DNA from: Dimorphilus gyrociliatus
Lineage: Eukaryota > Animalia > Annelida
DNA length: 64,000 nucleotides
Assembly: GCA_904063045.1 (NCBI GenBank)
Contig: CAJFCJ010000019.1
Span: 2,123,700 to 2,187,699 of the forward strand
Reading direction: 5' to 3'
Positions 2,757 through 33,398 of the stretch are shown piece after piece. The notes beneath the pieces are model-generated. The model saw only the letters and a list, made by a program, of their open reading frames with translations, made no database searches and was not told the origin of the DNA. Numbering within the stretch: position 1 is the stretch's first letter; each line of letters opens with the position of its first letter. The position numbers and the translations under genes are program-made.

Positions 2757-3661
2757 TTAACTCAGCTCCCTTTTCTTATTATCAATTAAAGATTTCCAAT
2801 CATCGGACCAGCTCTCTAATACTGATTTTGCTGAAGTTTTCCTGCCGGGTGCTCTAATTGAGGTATTATGGCATGCTCTAAAGAGAATGTGATCCCAAGG
2901 AGGGGATTTTAAAGCTCCAAATATTCTAGGTTTATCATCAATAAGCAAATTTCCATAGACAACAGTTTTATCTCTTGTTAGTATCAATTTATCAATCCAA
3001 GATCTACCAAAGTACTGTTCAACCCATTGAAACTATAAAAAACAAAATAGTTTTTACGTATGAATGACGTATAACAAAAAAAGTATTAATTTGCCTTTTC
3101 AACAGCGCAATATTTGTATGACCTCATCGGACTCGTGCATAAGAATACACTGACTCTGTTAACAAAATTTTTCTATTATTAATCAAGGATACTAGAAGAA
3201 CATTCAATTTTTTGATAACTTAATAGTATTATTATCTTTATCAGTTGATTGTTTTTTTTTTATAGTATTTATATAAAAAATAAATAAAAGTTGTACCCAT
3301 CCATTCCACTCATTTCCTTAAGACTATCAATTGCTTTGGGAATTGGTGGAATATTCTGAAAAAAACCTTCGGATGAAAAAATTGATTTAGCCTTGTTTCC
3401 ATATTCTTCTCCTAATTCTGAATATTGATCTGTCAGATAGAATTGATTCCTTTTTCCTAGGGCTATATATGGATCTTCGGGGTAAATCTTTTGATAGCAT
3501 TCCAAAAAGTATCCCTCGAAATCGCATATAACGCAATCCATGTCAACAAGAACAACCATATTTGAATTGCGTAGATGTCTCGTTGCCATACTCTTTAAAG
3601 CGCTACAATGAAATTGTCGAAAAATTTTCACTACTAATCCATAATTTCTTAAAAAGCGCAT
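2757..3661 (-). CDS. NT5M: 5'(3')-deoxyribonucleotidase (HAD family) with an N-terminal mitochondrial-presequence-like extension, 3 exons
   Basis: Motifs VLVDMDCVICDFEG, VFLCTSP...YCAVEK|FQWVEQYFG and LTRDKTVVYGNLLIDDKP. The N-terminus is Arg-rich and acid-poor. The second intron (3094-3033) is GC-AG. Confidence 0.92.
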
Positions 3662-23188: not shown

Positions 23189-24608
23189 TTAATATATTTT
23201 ATTGTCCGGATGTTTTTCATTGTTTCTGATATCTCTTTCAATCCAAGTTCTCCAAAGTGATCTAACAAAGTCGGTTACGGTGATTGTATTCGTATTACTT
23301 CCTATTAGACGTAATATAAATATTCCATCTGATTTCAAGTAGTCTTTAACGAATTTGTTCAAATCTTCCGATTGCTCATTGGCAGTTTGATATAAGCCAG
23401 CTAATTTTAAATGTTTACGGACATACCTCATATCATCTACCTTTGATATGCTCCTTAAGCTCCATTTTATGAGTGAAACACCCTGAATGAATATAAGCAC
23501 GATAATCCACCACCAAATGAATAAAAATAACTTTTCGTTAAACAGGTTGATTGGTAATACACATTGAACTGTGTAACGATGGATATTGCCTAAACGTCTA
23601 ACGTCTAAATCGCACATAGTAACCCTGGGAAATCTGTGAGAATCCGTCCAATCTCTACCAGCGGATAGTTCCATTAGGACTTGGAAGCCGTACATATGGA
23701 AATTAGAGCCCATAAAGTAGTTGAGAGAGACCAATACAGTAATAGCACTAGCTATATATAAGAATTTAGTCATTATGTATAGTGATATTAAATAAGTTCC
23801 TTTTTTACGGCCGCAGCAAATGCACAGTAGCGACAAGAAGTTTTTTAAAGATATTGTCACTCTACGGCTTAAATGCTCTTGGGCGAAAAGATACCGATTC
23901 ATTTGGTCAGTCATATGTTTAAGAGTCTTGTCTCTGTTGGGTATTTTCTCGGTATTCTGAAAGGTTTCTGCTGAATCGATTAACGACTTTATGTCTATAC
24001 CAGATTTATTATTCAAACTCCTCCAAACTAGACTTGCTTCAATACAAAGAGAGCTTTGTTCAAAAAATATATTTTCTTGAAAAAGTATATAACTTACGTA
24101 AATAGAAGAAAAGTGCCATGACAAGGAAGATGATGGGGACCCATTGATAATATGGTATCATTTCCCTTTTTTCACCAACCTTAGGAATATGTTCTTCAAA
24201 GGGTAGAAAATAAGTATTCTTAATCCAACAATAACTATTCGTATATTCTTCCCATCCGCCACTGAAGTGAGCGGGTACCCAACAAGTGATAGGATCGCCC
24301 ACAAACTTGAAAAATATATATAATTTCTTATATAGTAACTTTTTAAGGAGCCAAATTATTAATTAAATAAACTTTAATATAAAATATAACTATATTTTAT
24401 TGTAATAGAAATTGAAAAACTACTCAAATGTTGACTAAAAATTTTGTCTAGTTTAAAAGATATTAAATACCTGTTTTGCCGATACAACAAGCGCAAAAAC
24501 TATTAGTTTGGCAGTCATAAAGCGATGTGACAGACGATCAGCACTTGTATCATCTTTTCTTGTCTTCGATATTGGTATAGATCCTACCACGCCAATTATC
24601 TTATCCAT
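23189..24608 (-). CDS. Innexin (gap-junction protein), 3 coding exons
   Basis: MDKIIGVVG...DDTSADRLSHR...KQ|FVGDPITCWVPAHF...YCW...YYQWVP...|PSLVWRSL...FPRVTMCD...QCVLPINLFNEKLFLFIWWW. Four TM segments and paired extracellular Cys residues. Confidence 0.96.
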
Positions 24609-25590: not shown

Positions 25591-25809
25591 CCACATCAAC
25601 TCAACTTCCGTTTACAATTTCTTTTTTTTTTACTTTTTTTTAAATTAATACATATTTATAAAATCTCTCAGCCAATTTCAATTTGTTGATTTTTTATTAA
25701 GATTTAATTAATGAGCCCAAAGATAAAAATTTTAGATAAAGCCTATACAAGATATTCTATTATATCGTAGCTGTTTTAACTACTGTTAAACATGACTATT
25801 TCGTCGAGT

Positions 25810-25882
25810 GGCCTTGTGGCGCAATGGATAACGCGTCTGACTACGGATCAGAAGATTCCAGGTTCGAGTCCTGGCAAGGTCG
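25810..25882 (+). tRNA. tRNA-Arg, anticodon ACG
   Basis: GGCCTTG/CAAGGTC acceptor stem, A-box TGGCGCAATGG, anticodon loop CTACGGA and B-box GGTTCGAGTCC, followed by an oligo-T Pol III terminator. Confidence 0.97.
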
Positions 25883-27079
25883 GCTTGTAAAAATTTTTTT
25901 TTTTCCATAGACTTTTTTTTATATGGAAATAAAATTTGTCTTTTATTTTAATTGATCTTATTCAAAACATAAGTCTTTATAATCGATTCCCCTTTCAATA
26001 TTTGATTATTATATATTTATTGATTATCTATATATAGCGAAAAAAAAAGATAATATTAGTGAGATAGTTTATTAGATAATTGGCAAAAAGAATTTGATTA
26101 ACTTTTTAGAAACTCCCTGCAAATAGTCAAGCTGAGAGGAAAAAGTTGGCATTCCGAATAATGAAAGTAGAGTACAAAAACAAAGTACTCAACTTATTCA
26201 ACTTTTGTGTACTTTGTGTAAATTAGGGCCAGCTAATTAATACGAATTAAATGTTACATTTGCGCTTGAACTGAGCGTCTCACTCTTTGAAATATCTTCT
26301 ATATACCATTAATAGGCCTTATCAGGCTTAAATAATAGATTGTATTATAGGTGGCGCTATATTTAAGAAAATCACAATGATTTTCGACCTTGAGTAGAAG
26401 GCGAATGGGCGTTTAAAAATTTGTAATAAGAATTTTAAGGTCTTTTAATTGGTATTTCTTGAATGATCAAAGAAAATTTGGGCTATATTTGAAATTTTAG
26501 CAAATATCTGTAAATGTATGCTCCTGGTCGTATTTGACAAGAGTGGTAAAATCCCTATGAATAATAAGTTAGCGAAACAGTTAGCTCCTCAATTCTTCCT
26601 GTAGTAGTATTTGGAAGCCGGTACAGGTGAGTGCAGTCGATCACTCTTTTTTTTTAAATTAACTTTAAATCAAGTTTAACTTTTTTTTTTCTGTAATTAA
26701 GAGGTCAATTAGGCCTTTACTAAAACCTTTATATACGCCAAATAGCTAATATTATAGAAATTAATTATATTAATAAACCAAACTAAATACTATGAAACAT
26801 GATTAAGCCAATACCTACAATAAGACAACCGATAGCCAAGCTACTACGCCTTTGTTTGTAATAAATGACAAACAAATAAGGTACTCATACTAAATAATAA
26901 ACAATATTGAACGTTCAATATCATTCTAACATTAACGGCTTTATGCCAGATAAGAAACTATTTTTAATGCAGATATATTGGCCTTATAGAAATTTTATTA
27001 AAATCTTTATAAAGATAGATACTGAGTAATTCATTTTTAAATATTTTTCAACAATTAACAGCAATTTAAAACGTTTAAC

Positions 27080-30000
27080 ATGAAATCGTCGATTGGAACA
27101 TTTATTCTACTAATAATATATGGTAAGTTATCTTATGTTTTTATAAATATTATATAACTATATACTGAAAAGATGATTGTCGATACTTAATACGAAATTC
27201 TCCATTATTACATCATCTATATCTTAACAATCTTCTTATTTTATATATATATATATTTTTTTAAAAAAACAGTAGCCAAAAAATAAAAGCTGTTAACTAA
27301 ACATTTTTTTAACTTAGTAAAATAATATAGAAAAGTGAAGTATTATAATGATTATTACTATTCTTAATTAAATTAAATAGTTTTTTATTATCTTTTACTA
27401 GTCTTTTTTAACTAGTGAATTTTTATTATCTAATTTTATCGATAGTTTCTCTTTGAATTTATCCAAATTTATTGCTATAAATTAAAATTGACGGTAGAGG
27501 AGGAGAGGTGAATTATAGGTATAAGATGTTAGATTGGATAGGATTTAAGAGGGAGAGAATATTGAAAAATTATTAAACATATTTAATAATTATTTTAAAA
27601 ATCTTACATTGAAGAGTTTCATTCAATGCTTGCTCTTTTATCTTATCTAATTTTCTCTTACTAGTGAGCATGAAGCAAGCATAAACAACTAGAAAACCGC
27701 CGCCCAATACACCTGAACTAACTGCTAGAGGGGTCAAATTCGACCGAACTGGGGCACCGTAGACTTCTATTGCGAAACTAGTTTTTAAATAGCAAGACGT
27801 TTCCCTCTTATCCAATCCGTAAACGTCAAATAGTAGAATACCATTAAATGCGTTCAAATCGATATAATTATCGCTACTTGAATTTAATATTTCATATTCT
27901 TCATTAAGTTGTTTACTATCGAATTCTTGTTCATTTGATTTGAAACATGACTCATAGTTACTTCTATTCCACGCTTCTTCCGGATTGCTATTAATTCTAA
28001 GCATTTCTCTCCAATTTTGTGCCGGTTTCTTACAACCTACATCCTTTGCTTTTTTGTTATATCTAATCAATTAATTAATTTATTAGTAATTACCCATTTT
28101 TTTTATATAGGTAATTATATATTGTATATATTAATCATTTAGCAGGTTAACCTGTATAATTTTAAACCTCTTGTTTCGAATATTGTGAAATCGCCATCGT
28201 ATCTTTTAACTCTTTCATTGTTTTCATATATATCAAATTTTGGTCTAAAACCTATCGAATAGAATATACGCCAAGGACATCCATATTTATTATAATTGTA
28301 ATATCCCATTTGATAATCAGCCATTTCATCCTTACTCATACTTCTTACTAATTCTCCATCACTCATCTTCTCAGATTCTCGTAGGTACCTTTGAGCAGGA
28401 GTGAGTAATTCGTATTTCTTACTATTTCGCAATCAACATGGAAATTTATAAATGTAACGTTCTTGTTATTAGTGATAGAAATTACATTTAAGAGACTATA
28501 GGCTTACATTGGAATATAGTAGAATTTACTAGAATTCATATAATCGTAACAACTGGTATGCTTTAAATCTTTACTTTTTTAAGTAGTAAATATAAATATA
28601 TATAGTAATTTAAAGAAGCAAATAAAACTATTAAAATATCTTCAACCGGATCTTGGAATGTAATAATAGACTAATTGTAATATTTACCTAACTAATCGGA
28701 TGTGCTTTGTAGGTGGACAACCGGAAGTTATTGTTACAATCTTTTTGAAAAAATATTCATTTCACACTAAGCCCTTTTTTTTAGGGGTTATATGAAATTT
28801 TTAACATACTTTGGATGCCTTTCTAGCATTACATTGACCAAAATTCATTCTATGAGTAATGAGGATATTTCCTATTTGTTCCTTGTCGTTAGCTGAGTTA
28901 ATCATCTCGATAATCTATTTTGGAAATGATATATAATTATATATATATATAAACATATACATGTATGTATATGTTTATATGTAGGAATAATATTAAAAAG
29001 ACTATATTATCTGAATGTACAAACTATGGTTGATGGATTGTTATCTCTTTTTATATAGGAGCGAAAATTTGGATTAAGGGAGATAGTCGTCTGTTATTTT
29101 TTATTAAAAGTTATCTTTCAGTAATTTTCTACTCTGTTAAATAGGATAATTACTATACTATTAGTCATTAAAGGATCAGCTTTAATGATTTTTTGAATAA
29201 TTGACAACTTTTGTAAATCCATAAAAATCAACTCTCTTTGATTTTCATTCACATCTATTGATTCCCAAGAAAATTTACAAATGTTATTAACTTCGACCTT
29301 ATTGTTGTCATTCATTGGCCTCATTTCCCAATATCCAATACTATTAAATTCCAAAATAAATATAAACGACTCAAGTAAAACTACAACCTCATCATTTAGA
29401 GGTAGAATATTTTTATTCTCATAAAATATTGGATAAACGCAATCATATCCAAAATATATCTTTCTATTTGATTCAATTATGATAAAATAACCATTTGAAT
29501 TACTAATTGTTTGTCTAATGTGCTTTCTAAATGGTTTTGTTCCGTTTGTAAATATTTGTTTATTATTCTGTTCATGATTTAAGATTCTTAAATTTCTTCC
29601 TCTATCAACCGAATGATAAAGTTTCTCTTCATCATGTATAAAAACTGTTCCAATGTTTAATAGAGTATGAAAGAAATAAGGTCTACCCTTAACATTTTCA
29701 ATTTCCTCCATGACTATACTATCTGGTAAATGACTACCACCATATTTTGAATAGTTTCTCAGAATAATATAGAACTTAATATGTAAACAAAAGAAGAAAG
29801 AGAATATTCTAAACATTAAAACAATTTATATATCTAACTTTACTATTTATCTCTACAAGTATGGATACTGTATTGTCCAAATATAGACAGGCGTCAATAA
29901 TTTTTAGCTGAAGAAAGATAGCATAAAAACTATTGTCTTTTTTTTATGTAGAAAGAAATATATAGAGAAAAGATTTATTCCACTTACATTCTTTTGCTCT

Positions 30001-30519
30001 AAGCCTATGTCGAAATATGTTAAATATTTACCGCTATATTTTGATAGAAACATTGATTTTCCTTTAATAGCTAAAATTGTTTGATTAGCATTTAAACACC
30101 ACCAAACTTTGATAGATAAGCAACAATGTCCAGATGTTATTGAATTTATAGTAATATTCTTTTCTAGAAATTAAATAAGTATTAATTTCAATTAAAATCT
30201 CTCTCTCTCTCTCTCTCTCTAACCATTTTTCTCAAATATCTCAATTTCTATTAATACCAACTCAACAAAATTCCAATATTTATTATTAATATTCGTTAAA
30301 TTAACAAATAAATTTGAATATAAATCATCTCCACAATCGAATTTATAATTAAATTTTAATAAAACACTCGAATTAAAAGTAATCACTTTTTTATTATCAA
30401 TTTGAATATTTTTACATATGTTTACTTTATTTCCATTCATTGAAATAATTAATAATTTCGCATCTATTTGATAAATTTAACTAATTAACTATAAATATTA
30501 ATATATTAATATATATTGG

Positions 30520-30551
<32 letters not shown>

Positions 30552-32119
30552 TACTTTCTATATATTGTTTCTCAAATGATAGGATACTACCAATAAGTAG
30601 TCCTCGTTTTATTTTAATTGGCCTTATAAATGTTGCTTTCCACCATGGTAGATTTGAATTTGAAAGAATTCTTGTAAATGTATTAAAATCTCCATCAACC
30701 GCTAAATTTGGATTTGTTGAATATATTTGACTTTCTTGTTCTAGTATTGCTATTTCCTTAAAGTTTATAGGTTCTGGAAATATATTGCACCTCTAAAATT
30801 AATTGGTACTATATTTTTATTACTATCTGATAAGAGGAGCTGTTCAATGCTGTTGGGTTCTCGGCAATTCATGTATTGAAGTCTAAATAATTTTGAATTA
30901 ATAACCAAAGCTAGATAGTTTCCGACAAATGTCATTGAAGTAACAATTGGATTGTCCTAATAGAATTTTTTCAATTCTTTATATTTAGCTTGTGGGTTAT
31001 CATTAACTTATATAACTATTTACTGTTGATTTAAAGATAGTTTGATTGAACTCTGTACAAGGCTTATCATCAAATCCAGAAAGTGTTATGTATAAATAAT
31101 CGTTAAATCTAGATATAAAATATATGCAGTTTATTTATATTTTATGTATTATATCACATACATACTTGGCTACCACTATATGTCGTTCATTACAGGGATG
31201 CTGTAGAACGATTGTATCATTATAACCAGATTTTAACTTTATTATACTCTGAGAATACAGAATTTTAATAAGATTTATTAGGATAAACTGTAATTGCAGC
31301 ATTGTTATTCAAATAACTATTTCTTTTTTTTTTACGTTCCGTAGCCGAAGCCTGTTTTTATCAACGTATTGTAAGGAAACAGAGCGCACCCCGTCATTTT
31401 GTGGCAAAAATTGATAGCAGAAGATCAACGTTCAAATACAATATTTCCATAACATCACCTACAACTATACAACCTTTGACTAATGTTTCTACGGAATCAT
31501 CTCTAATACACCAAATAAGAAATTGTACACCAAATGAAGAAATTCAACAAAATTGCAGAAGAGGTGTACCTTGTGAAGTTTCATACATTTCAAATGGAAC
31601 CCACGAAGTTGGGAATATATATTGCCGGTAATTATTATACTTTATCCATTTCCAACCCCCCCTCCTACCTATATCCCATATTTATTATTGTCTTATTTCA
31701 GTTGTCCGGCAGGATATTCGGGTCCTCGTTGTCATTTACCCGGAGGTAATAATTTTATATCAATTGTCTTTTAGTTTCATTTTTTAAATACTTATCTCTT
31801 TTTCCAGCCTATACAGCTTTATCTAACGTTGGAACAGGATTAATTGCTTTTGCAGTATCAGCAGTTGTTATTACAATTTTTGTCGGTATTCTATTTGTTT
31901 TTCTATATAAAAAGTAAGTAAAAAAGACTTGATACTTTGATAATTATGCTAATATTTAAAAAAAATAACTATTCTTCTCTCCCTAATAGAAAGAAAGCAA
32001 AATCTGAAGGTAGATATTGTTGTGCAGCCAATAGACCAGAAGCCCAACACCTAAATCGAGAAGTTGCTCTTGGCAGTCTAGAATCTTCACATTTAAATGG
32101 AAAACCGGAAGTATCTTGA
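27080..32119 (+). CDS. EGF-family (EGFR/ErbB) ligand-like type I membrane precursor: signal peptide, pro-region, single EGF module, TM, short tail; 5 coding exons
   Basis: Exons 27080-27122 (MKSSIGTFILLIIY, phase-1 GTAAGT donor), 31345-31627, 31702-31745, 31808-31913 and 31990-32119, all phase-compatible. EGF module C-X9-C-X5-C-X16-C-R|C-PAGYSGPR-C, then TM GLIAFAVSAVVITIFVGILFVFLY and basic KKKKAK. Confidence 0.8.
27398..31302 (-). CDS. CatSper auxiliary subunit delta/epsilon-like type I membrane protein, multi-exon, nested in intron 1 of the EGF-ligand gene
   Basis: Signal peptide MLQLQFILINLIKILYSQ followed by LQHPCNERHIVV (cf. CATSPERD IKHPCEKNIAL). The C-terminal block YGCPWRIFY...GCKKPAQNWREML...WNRSNYESC...YEILNSS...SCYLKTSFAIEVYG plus TM matches the remembered CATSPERD/E C-terminus. 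Internal exon limits are only partly resolved. Confidence 0.8.
30199..30220. repeat. (CT)n microsatellite in an intron
   Basis: ctctctctctctctctctctct run. Confidence 0.85.
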
Positions 32120-32618: not shown

Positions 32619-33398
32619 CTACTGTTTCTTCGGATAGGGTATATCCGACTGGGATCCAGGAGTAGCGCCTAAAAACGTAATATAATAATGTATCGTCCTT
32701 GCAATTGCTATTTAACATCAGTATTTCATATACGTACCGAGATATGGTGGAGCGCTCGCATTATAATATTGATGACCTCCACTAGGATACTGGGGAGCAT
32801 TACCCGGATACATAGGAGGCATATTTGGGACACTACCACCTGGTTGCGTTGGATAAGCAGGCATAGGCTGATTCATTAGGGGTCGCATGGGCTGTTGCAT
32901 AGGAGGCTGCACGGGGTGAGATTGATTGGGAACTCCGGGATACATTCCATAAGGCGGCGGCTGACCGTAAGGAACACTTCCCGGACCAGGTGGTGGGGGT
33001 TGCACTCCCATTGGATAACTAGGACCACCAAATGGTGCTTGTGGAGCACCAGGCAGAATATAATTTGGTCCAGTTGGGGTCTGCTGAACAATCTGAATAA
33101 AATGACTCATTATTTACACTGCTTAAATTTGTAAGATAATATGCTTACCAAGCCTAACTCAGCGGCTGCAAGTTCTGCAGGTATTCCTCTCTATGTCACA
33201 ATTTAAGTCTCAAATTAACTCTATTTAACTGAAAGGTGGAATACAGACTTTTTTACACCTTTTATGGAGCTTCTTAACCAGTTTCTTCTGTTGTTTCATA
33301 TGCTTCTTGTATGGATGTTTGAACCCATCGTCACTGCTACTGCTGCTACTAGATGACGATGAATTGTAGCGTCTACGAAATTTGTGTTTTTTTCCCAT
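32619..33398 (-). CDS. Uncharacterised protein: basic/poly-Ser N-terminus and Pro/Gln/Tyr/Gly-rich low-complexity C-terminus, about 4 exons
   Basis: MGKKHKFRRRYNSSSSSSSSSDDGFKHPYKKHMK...|RGIPAELAAAELGL|IVQQTPTGPNY...SAPPYLG|ATPGSQSDIPYPKKQ*. GT-AG introns; the first donor is uncertain. Confidence 0.7.

Follow-up and report, generated by a model that had tools for sequence, protein, structure and literature searches.

Within a 64,000-nucleotide stretch of contig CAJFCJ010000019.1 of the annelid Dimorphilus gyrociliatus (hereafter the window), two protein-coding genes lie on opposite strands, one inside the first intron of the other. We refer to the outer, plus-strand gene as the host and to the inner, minus-strand gene as the guest, and their features are collected in Table 1. 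The gene model of the host is already public under the identifier DgyrCDS11811 (protein CAD5123466.1, 201 aa), in an annotation for which PASA transcript assemblies were weighted tenfold over ab initio models (PMC7854359). When mapped exon by exon onto the window (606 nt in total), this public protein proved identical to the spliced model of the initial annotation, and its N-terminus, MKSSIGTFILLIIYAEACF, is the same as that predicted from joining position 27122 to position 31345.

Table 1. Features of the host and guest genes, in window coordinates. Slashes within sequence motifs mark the splice or cleavage point; "relative" denotes the related species used for comparison.
Feature	Positions	Strand	Description and support
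Host exon 1	27080..27122	+	First coding exon, 14 codons plus 1 base, phase 1; ATG at 27080; putative signal-peptide h-region MKSSIGTFILLIIY; donor G/GTAAGT; residues 1-14 of DgyrCDS11811
Host intron 1	27123..31344	+	4222 nt; holds the whole CatSper-like CDS
Host exon 2	31345..31627	+	Residues 16-108 of DgyrCDS11811; cleavage motif AEA/C, N-glycosylated spacer (predicted), EGF cysteines C1-C4; joint 31627>31702 in RNA contigs
Host exon 3	31702..31745	+	EGF cysteines C5-C6 (CPAGYSGPRCHLPG); RNA joint, protein map, relative
Host exon 4	31808..31913	+	Predicted transmembrane helix; 97% identity in relative
Host exon 5	31990..32119	+	Short cytoplasmic tail (predicted) and stop codon; RNA joint, protein map, relative
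Guest exon 1	31166..31302	-	ATG at 31302, signal-peptide-like N-terminus, donor CAA/GTATGT; predicted from open frame
Guest exon 2	31024..31108	-	77% identity over 30 aa in relative
Guest exon 3	30824..30956	-	Faint match to CATSPERD beta-propeller, PF15020, E 0.12, profile positions 54-83
Guest exon 4	30555..30773	-	62% identity over 79 aa in relative
Guest exon 5	30224..30463	-	Open frame, splice phase, relative
Guest exon 6	29988..30163	-	Open frame, splice phase, relative
Guest exon 7	29154..29774	-	207 codons; 60% identity to protein P0004 of relative
Guest exon 8	29025..29090	-	Joint 29025/28914 in RNA contigs; relative
Guest exon 9	28810..28914	-	Both joints in RNA contigs, CT..AC on the plus strand; relative
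Guest exon 10	28688..28740	-	Both joints in RNA contigs; relative
Guest exon 11	28152..28421	-	Start of CATSPERD/E C-terminal domain; both joints in RNA contigs
Guest exon 12	27608..28062	-	CATSPERD/E C-terminal domain and single TM helix; joint 28062/28152 in RNA contigs
Guest exon 13	27398..27474	-	Short tail, TAG stop; predicted, without RNA joint support
Gap between guest ATG and host exon-2 acceptor	31303..31344		42 nt; host polypyrimidine tract and conserved ACGTTYCGT..AG
Cryptic acceptor in guest exon 12	27665..27700	+	GT..AG joint from the 27122 donor; stop after 6 codons
56-nt GT..AG skip in RNA	29089..29144	+	Joint 29088>29145; unfit for the guest frame

An initial annotation, made from the sequence alone, had proposed that the exon at 31345 requires an upstream phase-1 exon and had paired it with the one at 27080-27122, and both proposals withstood closer analysis. 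The acceptor AG of host exon 2 occupies positions 31343-31344, and because an in-frame TAA lies at 31314, 31 nt 5' of the exon, and the whole EGF/TM frame is without a methionine, the host needs an upstream coding exon. Among 30 candidates (each an ATG with a phase-1 donor, between 24.3 and 31.3 kb), exon 27080-27122 ranked first by donor match (8/9) and third by hydrophobicity, and it is the exon used in the public model. Two other first exons, 29281-29374 and 31124-31181, were rejected on account of weaker donors, the lack of an RNA joint and the lack of conservation. Also rejected was a start codon supplied by a spliced leader, for which the frame would not fit, trans-splicing moreover not being reported in the genome paper (PMC7854359).

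Taken together, the five host exons encode a predicted type I membrane protein, in which a signal peptide and a spacer precede a single EGF-like module, followed in turn by a transmembrane helix and a short tail. This is the architecture of TGF-alpha, Spitz and LIN-3, with which the host also shares an intron between cysteines 4 and 5, exons 2 and 3 meeting within the Arg codon that separates C4 from C5. The single EGF module adjoins the membrane anchor, with the helix beginning 10 residues past C6, and both the six cysteines and a CxCxxGYxGxRC motif are present. In ErbB ligands the cysteines are canonically spaced as CX7CX4-5CX10-13CXCX8C, a pattern from which the host departs (9-5-16-1-8) through longer first and third loops. 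When Pfam EGF models were run against the host they scored 16.6 and 13.3 bits, below their cut-offs; a Spitz/LIN-3 chimera was matched weakly by residues 49-120 (E 0.048), and Notch EGF repeats matched the host as well as EGF ligands did. In searches of proteins and Logan contigs, no homologues were detectable beyond the dinophilid relative described below. The likeness of the host to an EGF ligand, as which the initial annotation described it, is one of architecture only.

The guest coding sequence runs along the minus strand from 31302 to 27398 and comprises 13 exons (2637 nt, 878 aa), with all phases consistent and an AATAAA directly 3' of the TAG, still within the host intron. Its provisional assignment as CatSper-like was borne out by profile searches, in which PF22850 matched two exons at 71.1 and 32.1 bits (cut-off 27.4), with E-values of 1.2e-19 for exon 12 and 1e-7 for exon 11. 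In the PDB, structures 7EEB and 9UBW yielded further matches to the guest through their CatSper delta and epsilon chains, exon 11 matching CatSper epsilon at E 8e-4 and exon 12 matching chains 7eeb_G (delta) and 7eeb_H (epsilon) at E 2.5e-10 and 2.4e-8, respectively. The length of the protein and inspection of its translations indicated a type I topology, with a hydrophobic N-terminus and a helix, GVLGGGFLVVYACFML, in exon 12. In this, the guest resembles mouse CATSPERD and CATSPERE (7EEB chains G and H), which likewise begin with a signal-like peptide and end, beyond a C-terminal CATSPERD/E domain and a single transmembrane helix, in a short tail, and which at 805 and 985 aa flank it in length. 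It differs from them in that divergence across the N-terminal two thirds is too great to leave sequence matches in Pfam or the PDB, save for the faint PF15020 match on exon 3, which is the sole trace of an N-terminal beta-propeller in these databases and is consistent in position. For exon 7, searches of Pfam, the PDB (phmmer) and the ESM Atlas returned chance-level matches only, and an AlphaFold model built from a two-row alignment had a pLDDT of 36.

As to the choice between delta and epsilon, the PDB scores conflict between guest exons. A second CATSPERD/E paralogue was found on another contig of D. gyrociliatus, and it is equally ambiguous in this respect. Judged by its encoded protein, the guest is a complete gene for a CatSper delta/epsilon-type accessory subunit of the sperm channel; the supplements of the genome paper mention neither CatSper nor the gene identifier (PMC7854359).

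Host intron 1 contains the entire guest coding sequence, on the opposite strand. The initial annotation had described this intron as almost entirely filled by the guest, with the guest ATG close to the host acceptor, and its coordinates hold: the guest takes up 92% of the intron, leaving 275 nt on the side of host exon 1 and 42 nt between the ATG at 31302 and host exon 2 at 31345. Nesting of this kind is common. Textbook examples of nested opposite-strand genes are OMG, EVI2A and EVI2B, in an intron of human NF1; others are F8A, in intron 22 of F8, and a pupal cuticle gene in Drosophila Gart. The present locus is like the NF1, F8 and Gart pairs in that a complete guest with its own exons lies antisense within one host intron, in that this intron is far above the genome norm (the median intron of D. 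gyrociliatus is 66 nt; PMC7854359), and in that host and guest are functionally unrelated. It differs from them in its tighter ends (42 nt and about 275 nt), in a guest of 13 exons that occupies so much of the intron, and in a far-side host exon of merely 43 coding bases. The pair is an ordinary nested antisense pair that is packed unusually tightly.

Synteny in related annelids had been put forward as a check on this layout, and both the nested arrangement and an orthologue of host exon 1 are present in a related species, at about 60% protein identity. The comparison was made with two contigs, L005 and L006, from a set of independent contigs spanning four runs, SRR23372228, SRR23372229, SRR23372231 and SRR31984834. 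Across the two, all 13 guest exons are colinear, including exon 1 (59% identity over 37 aa; L005 1538-1648) and exon 13 (65% over 23 aa; L006 2962-3030). Host exons 2-5 lie on the opposite strand, head-to-head upstream of the guest (the exon 2 orthologue at L005 1414-1125), while the orthologue of host exon 1, MKLSIGTFILLIFY (14 codons), lies beyond the guest stop at L006 3374-3332. The latter carries the same G/GTAAGT donor in the same phase 1 as its counterpart in D. gyrociliatus, with which it shares 12 of 14 residues, the next-best match among 15,432 six-frame windows being 6 of 14; the codon changes between the two comprise five that are synonymous and two that are non-synonymous. In both species, the joining of exon 1 to exon 2 completes a conserved signal-peptidase motif, YAEA/C.

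Since a related species shows the same arrangement in contigs of independent origin, the layout is neither a chance occurrence nor a misassembly. The proposition that the nesting is an artefact of assembly or annotation, in favour of which nothing was found, is refuted by this repetition of order and orientation in four runs of another species, and the RNA joints described below fit the window sequence on both strands without mismatches; we give it practically no credence.

RNA evidence was drawn from assembled RNA-like contigs of one run (X1), which represents a bulk sample and holds spliced RNA of both genes. For the host, these contigs contain the joints 31627>31702, 31745>31808 and 31913>31990; for the guest, they contain 28062/28152, 28421/28688, 28740/28810 and 28914/29025. 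In the 5' half of the guest, exon 1 included, the contigs of this run hold no spliced joints and support comes from conservation. The 3' boundary of guest exon 7 is a predicted one and differs from the joint found in RNA. At the other end of the locus, one RNA contig demonstrates use of the donor at 27122, joined to a cryptic acceptor at 27665. Contig 1 begins at a point precisely 30 nt 5' of the donor, a distance that would fit a branch in a k=31 graph. The contigs of this run contain neither the 27122>31345 joint nor a loose end at 31345, which is a weak negative, since contigs lose short dead-end paths and rare variants; the full 201-aa host product is encoded by no Logan contig.

These contigs could also be read as placing 27080-27122 at the head of a separate, antisense non-coding transcript over the 3' end of the guest, in which case the EGF gene would start elsewhere. 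The sole RNA joint from the 27122 donor leads to 27665 and a 20-codon dead-end frame, as such a reading would have it, and one contig runs unspliced from 30582 past 31345 into host exon 2, although, since it also continues into the neighbouring gene, this contig is a composite. However, the exon is conserved as a coding exon, in its ATG, its phase, its donor and its excess of synonymous over non-synonymous changes, and its join to exon 2 yields the signal-peptidase motif in both species. Furthermore, it is the exon of the public model, the other candidates are not close, and the EGF frame lacks a methionine of its own. We therefore consider a non-coding origin of this exon very improbable.

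Taken together, these data make it highly probable that the locus is an ordinary nested opposite-strand pair, in which host exon 27080-27122 would be spliced to exon 2 over a 4222-nt intron that holds the whole CatSper guest. Since the complete guest lies on the other strand of that intron, transcription of the host would have to run antisense through the entire guest gene. In addition, given the 42 nt between the start codon of the guest and the host acceptor, the core promoter of the guest probably lies on or beside host exon 2. The two genes would most likely coexist through separate cell types, with the guest expressed in the spermatids of dwarf males and the host elsewhere, and the nesting would then be tolerated, not used as a switch. 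The cryptic splices inside guest exons suggest that this arrangement carries a real cost to the host.

An alternative, in line with the expectation of the initial annotation that the two genes interfere or are expressed in mutually exclusive cells, is that the overlap acts as a regulatory toggle. Host exon 2 would then carry the guest promoter, and transcription of either gene would suppress its partner, whether by transcriptional interference, by antisense RNA or by occlusion of splice sites, to give sperm-versus-soma exclusivity. The short distance from guest ATG to host acceptor is in keeping with this, as are the retention of the head-to-acceptor layout in the relative, the plus-strand spliced RNA that crosses guest exons (27122>27665 and 29088>29145), and the narrow promoters of D. 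gyrociliatus, whose regulatory information is mostly found no more than 1 kb from the start site (PMC7854359). Yet the gap itself differs between the two species, at 42 nt in D. gyrociliatus against 102 nt in the relative, and its conservation between them is limited to the host's own 3' splice signals. Moreover, spliced RNA of both genes occurs within the same bulk sample, and interference would be unnecessary given separate cell types. A toggle accordingly seems unlikely to us, and we think it quite doubtful that the guest promoter lies on the host 3' splice site and exon 2 such that the firing of one gene blocks productive expression of the other. If true, this would amount to a hard-wired toggle of sex or cell type, with an EGF-type signal on one side and a CatSper subunit on the other, in a species in which males consist of a few hundred cells.

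As an ordinary nested pair, the locus shows to what extent genes can be packed in an animal genome of 78 Mb while ordinary gene structure is retained: in two species, a 43-base signal-peptide exon has persisted 4.2 kb away from the remaining host exons, and the space between is occupied by a 13-exon gene on the opposite strand. It would likewise offer a clean natural test of antisense read-through, and of the overlap of a promoter with a splice site, for a germline-restricted gene.

The whole coding sequence of the CatSper-like guest gene lies within intron 1 of the host, on the opposite strand, and the two form a conventional nested antisense pair. This confirms the nesting described in the initial annotation. 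The structural interpretation is supported by 13 minus-strand open segments that can be linked through canonical GT-AG sites with all phases consistent, by a PF22850 domain, and by the same arrangement in a related worm.

Coordinates of the host, the guest and neighbouring features
Feature	Position	Strand	Remarks
Innexin gene	23189-24608	-	YYQWVPIIF motif; N-terminal MDKIIGVVGS...
tRNA-Arg(ACG)	25809-25884	+	Rfam 61.5 bits; ARAGORN
Host exon 1	27080-27122	+
Host exons 2-5	31345-31627, 31702-31745, 31808-31913, 31990-32119	+	encode EGF module, transmembrane helix, tail
Guest exon 1	31302-31166	-	predicted model
Guest exon 2	31108-31024	-	predicted model
Guest exon 3	30956-30824	-	predicted model; faint CATSPERD beta-propeller match
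Guest exon 4	30773-30555	-	predicted model
Guest exon 5	30463-30224	-	predicted model
Guest exon 6	30163-29988	-	predicted model
Guest exon 7	29774-29154	-	predicted model
Guest exon 8	29090-29025	-	predicted model; RNA joint 28914/29025
Guest exon 9	28914-28810	-	RNA joints 28914/29025, 28740/28810
Guest exon 10	28740-28688	-	RNA joints 28740/28810, 28421/28688
Guest exon 11	28421-28152	-	RNA joints 28421/28688, 28062/28152
Guest exon 12	28062-27608	-	RNA joint 28062/28152
Guest exon 13	27474-27398	-	predicted model
(TC)n run	30189-30228		guest intron 5; RNA contigs break
(TA)n run	30520-30560		guest intron 4; RNA contigs break
P/Q-rich gene	32718-33110	-	convergent with host

The guest coding sequence totals 2637 nt (878 codons plus stop), which makes it longer than mouse CatSper delta (805 aa) and shorter than epsilon (985 aa), and its product is predicted to have a signal-like N-terminus and a single C-terminal helix. 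Family searches were run exon by exon rather than with a joined protein (for the host, the joined protein was the stored entry P0001 only). Pfam PF22850, the C-terminal domain of CATSPERD/E, was hit by the two largest 3' exons (E = 1.2e-19 and 1e-7), which also matched mouse CatSper delta and epsilon (PDB 7EEB and 9UBW). Sequence in the N-terminal two thirds has diverged beyond the reach of such searches, apart from the faint match of exon 3 (E = 0.12, position-consistent). Judged by its C-terminal domain, the predicted protein is a CATSPERD/E family member; its PDB match scores conflict between exons over delta versus epsilon. A second gene of this family, at locus L002 (G000:C2:1687748-1688350, minus strand; PF22850, 90.7 bits), brings the paralogues in the genome to two, and it resembles mouse delta and epsilon to much the same degree. 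Mammalian CatSper auxiliary subunits belong to the sperm flagellum. Annelid CatSper genes have been described before.

On the host side, the frame encoding the EGF module, transmembrane helix and tail (31345-32119) contains no methionine, and an in-frame TAA at 31314 shuts it 31 nt upstream of exon 2, whose acceptor AG (31343-31344) lies behind a long T-run; an upstream phase-1 exon with an ATG is therefore required. Among 30 candidates from an ATG-plus-phase-1-donor scan over 24.3-31.3 kb, 27080-27122 ranked first for donor match (8/9) and third for hydrophobicity. It comprises 14 codons (MKSSIGTFILLIIY) and one base, ending at the donor G|GTAAGT (27122/27123). Used on its own in an exhaustive profile search, exon 2 retrieved P0001 (CAD5123466.1, DgyrCDS11811; 201 aa, N-terminus MKSSIGTFILLIIYAEACF), a public protein of the annelid D. 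gyrociliatus, at 100% identity from its residue 16, and the five host exons, translated each in its own phase (606 nt in sum), all fall at their expected places in it. The 27122>31345 join proposed initially is thus identical to the published model, and the host gene model is already public. The annotation was produced by EvidenceModeler, which gave PASA transcript assemblies a weight of 10 against 1 for ab initio models (PMC7854359). The upstream neighbour of host exon 1 is the innexin gene, whose start is some 2.5 kb away; the tRNA gene lies between them.

The description of the host as an EGF-ligand gene reflects an architectural resemblance. Its architecture is TGF-alpha/Spitz-like, with an intron between C4 and C5, but the EGF module scores under Pfam cut-offs, the cysteine spacing (9-5-16-1-8) differs from the ligand pattern, and protein and contig searches detected no homologues outside the relative. 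We therefore limit the label to 'EGF-type membrane protein, candidate ligand'.

Guest exon 7, used as a word-search query against the Logan assemblies, found one protein, P0004 (60% identity), from the related worm. The contigs behind it, L005 (4364 nt) and L006 (3434 nt), share 1850 identical overlapping bases and are unspliced, and were hence taken as genomic. All 13 guest exons are present on one strand in the same order (47-77% identity), with similarity stopping at predicted exon boundaries. Host exons 2-5 occupy the opposite strand (L005 1414-625), a short way upstream of the guest ATG, with 97% identity in the transmembrane exon. Past the guest stop, at L006 3374-3332, lies ATGAAGTTATCAATTGGAACATTTATTCTCCTTATTTTTTATG|GTAAGT, which encodes MKLSIGTFILLIFY and shares the phase-1 donor. 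This orthologue of exon 1 matches at 12 of 14 residues, the next-best of 15,432 six-frame windows at 6, and of its codon changes 5 are synonymous and 2 non-synonymous. Splicing to exon 2 creates ...YAEA|C... in the two species alike, a conserved signal-peptidase-type motif. The synteny check offered in the initial annotation thus shows the nesting to be conserved, and the tiny exon 1 is under coding constraint. In L006 only 37 nt precede the exon-1 ATG before the contig passes into Illumina adapter sequence (3412-3434), so the relative's host promoter region was not recovered.

Transcript evidence came from X1, a single run of Logan contigs whose type is not on record. It behaves as RNA, since on both strands its contigs jump over segments of intron length that have canonical ends; depth is per contig, so host and guest levels cannot be ranked from it. 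Three host joints were seen (31627>31702, 31745>31808, 31913>31990), alongside the tabulated guest joints. The 27122 donor is used, but its partner is a good acceptor within guest exon 12, at 27665; across this joint the frame would end after six further codons (a dead-end 20-codon frame). A second plus-strand GT..AG skip, of 56 nt (29089-29144; 29088>29145), misfits the guest frame and nearly coincides with the guest's own predicted frame-keeping intron (29091-29153). Spliced plus-strand RNA therefore traverses the guest body, as expected if host pre-mRNA spans it; the two joints look like cryptic splicing of that pre-mRNA or a separate antisense RNA. The 27122>31345 joint is absent from the X1 contigs, and one contig (contig 5, 2054 nt) runs unspliced from 30582 through 31345. 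Both carry little weight, because contig 5 may be composite, the start of contig 1 hints at a branch, and a first exon of some 80 nt is the kind of short dead-end path that assemblers routinely clip. Contig 1 starts exactly 30 nt upstream of the 27122 donor, which fits a k=31 graph branch, and we infer that exon 1 had at least one further continuation. Contig 5 links unspliced guest 5' sequence with host exons 2-5 and extends about 450 nt beyond 32400 towards the P/Q-rich gene, suggesting that the 3' ends overlap or that the contig is composite. Contigs also break off at 27587, 28105, 29771 and 31830 into sequence absent from the window (loose ends of at least 255 nt in three of the four), which may stem from repeats or chimeras, or from joints made with distant exons.

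The guest ATG lies 42 nt from the host acceptor, the only room before host exon 2 (102 nt in the relative), and conservation within the gap is confined to the host's own T-run and ACGTTYCGT..AG; the guest polyadenylation signal lies inside the host intron. Since D. gyrociliatus promoters are narrow (PMC7854359) and only 42 nt are available, a guest core promoter overlapping host exon 2, as initially suggested, or the host splice site is plausible. The accompanying idea of interference or enforced mutual exclusivity stands as a proposal. The cryptic 27122>27665 product may mean that the host pays some cost in splicing. The males of D. gyrociliatus are dwarfs, 50 µm in size and built of a few hundred cells (PMC7854359). 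On the simplest view, host and guest would be expressed in separate cells, with the nesting tolerated.
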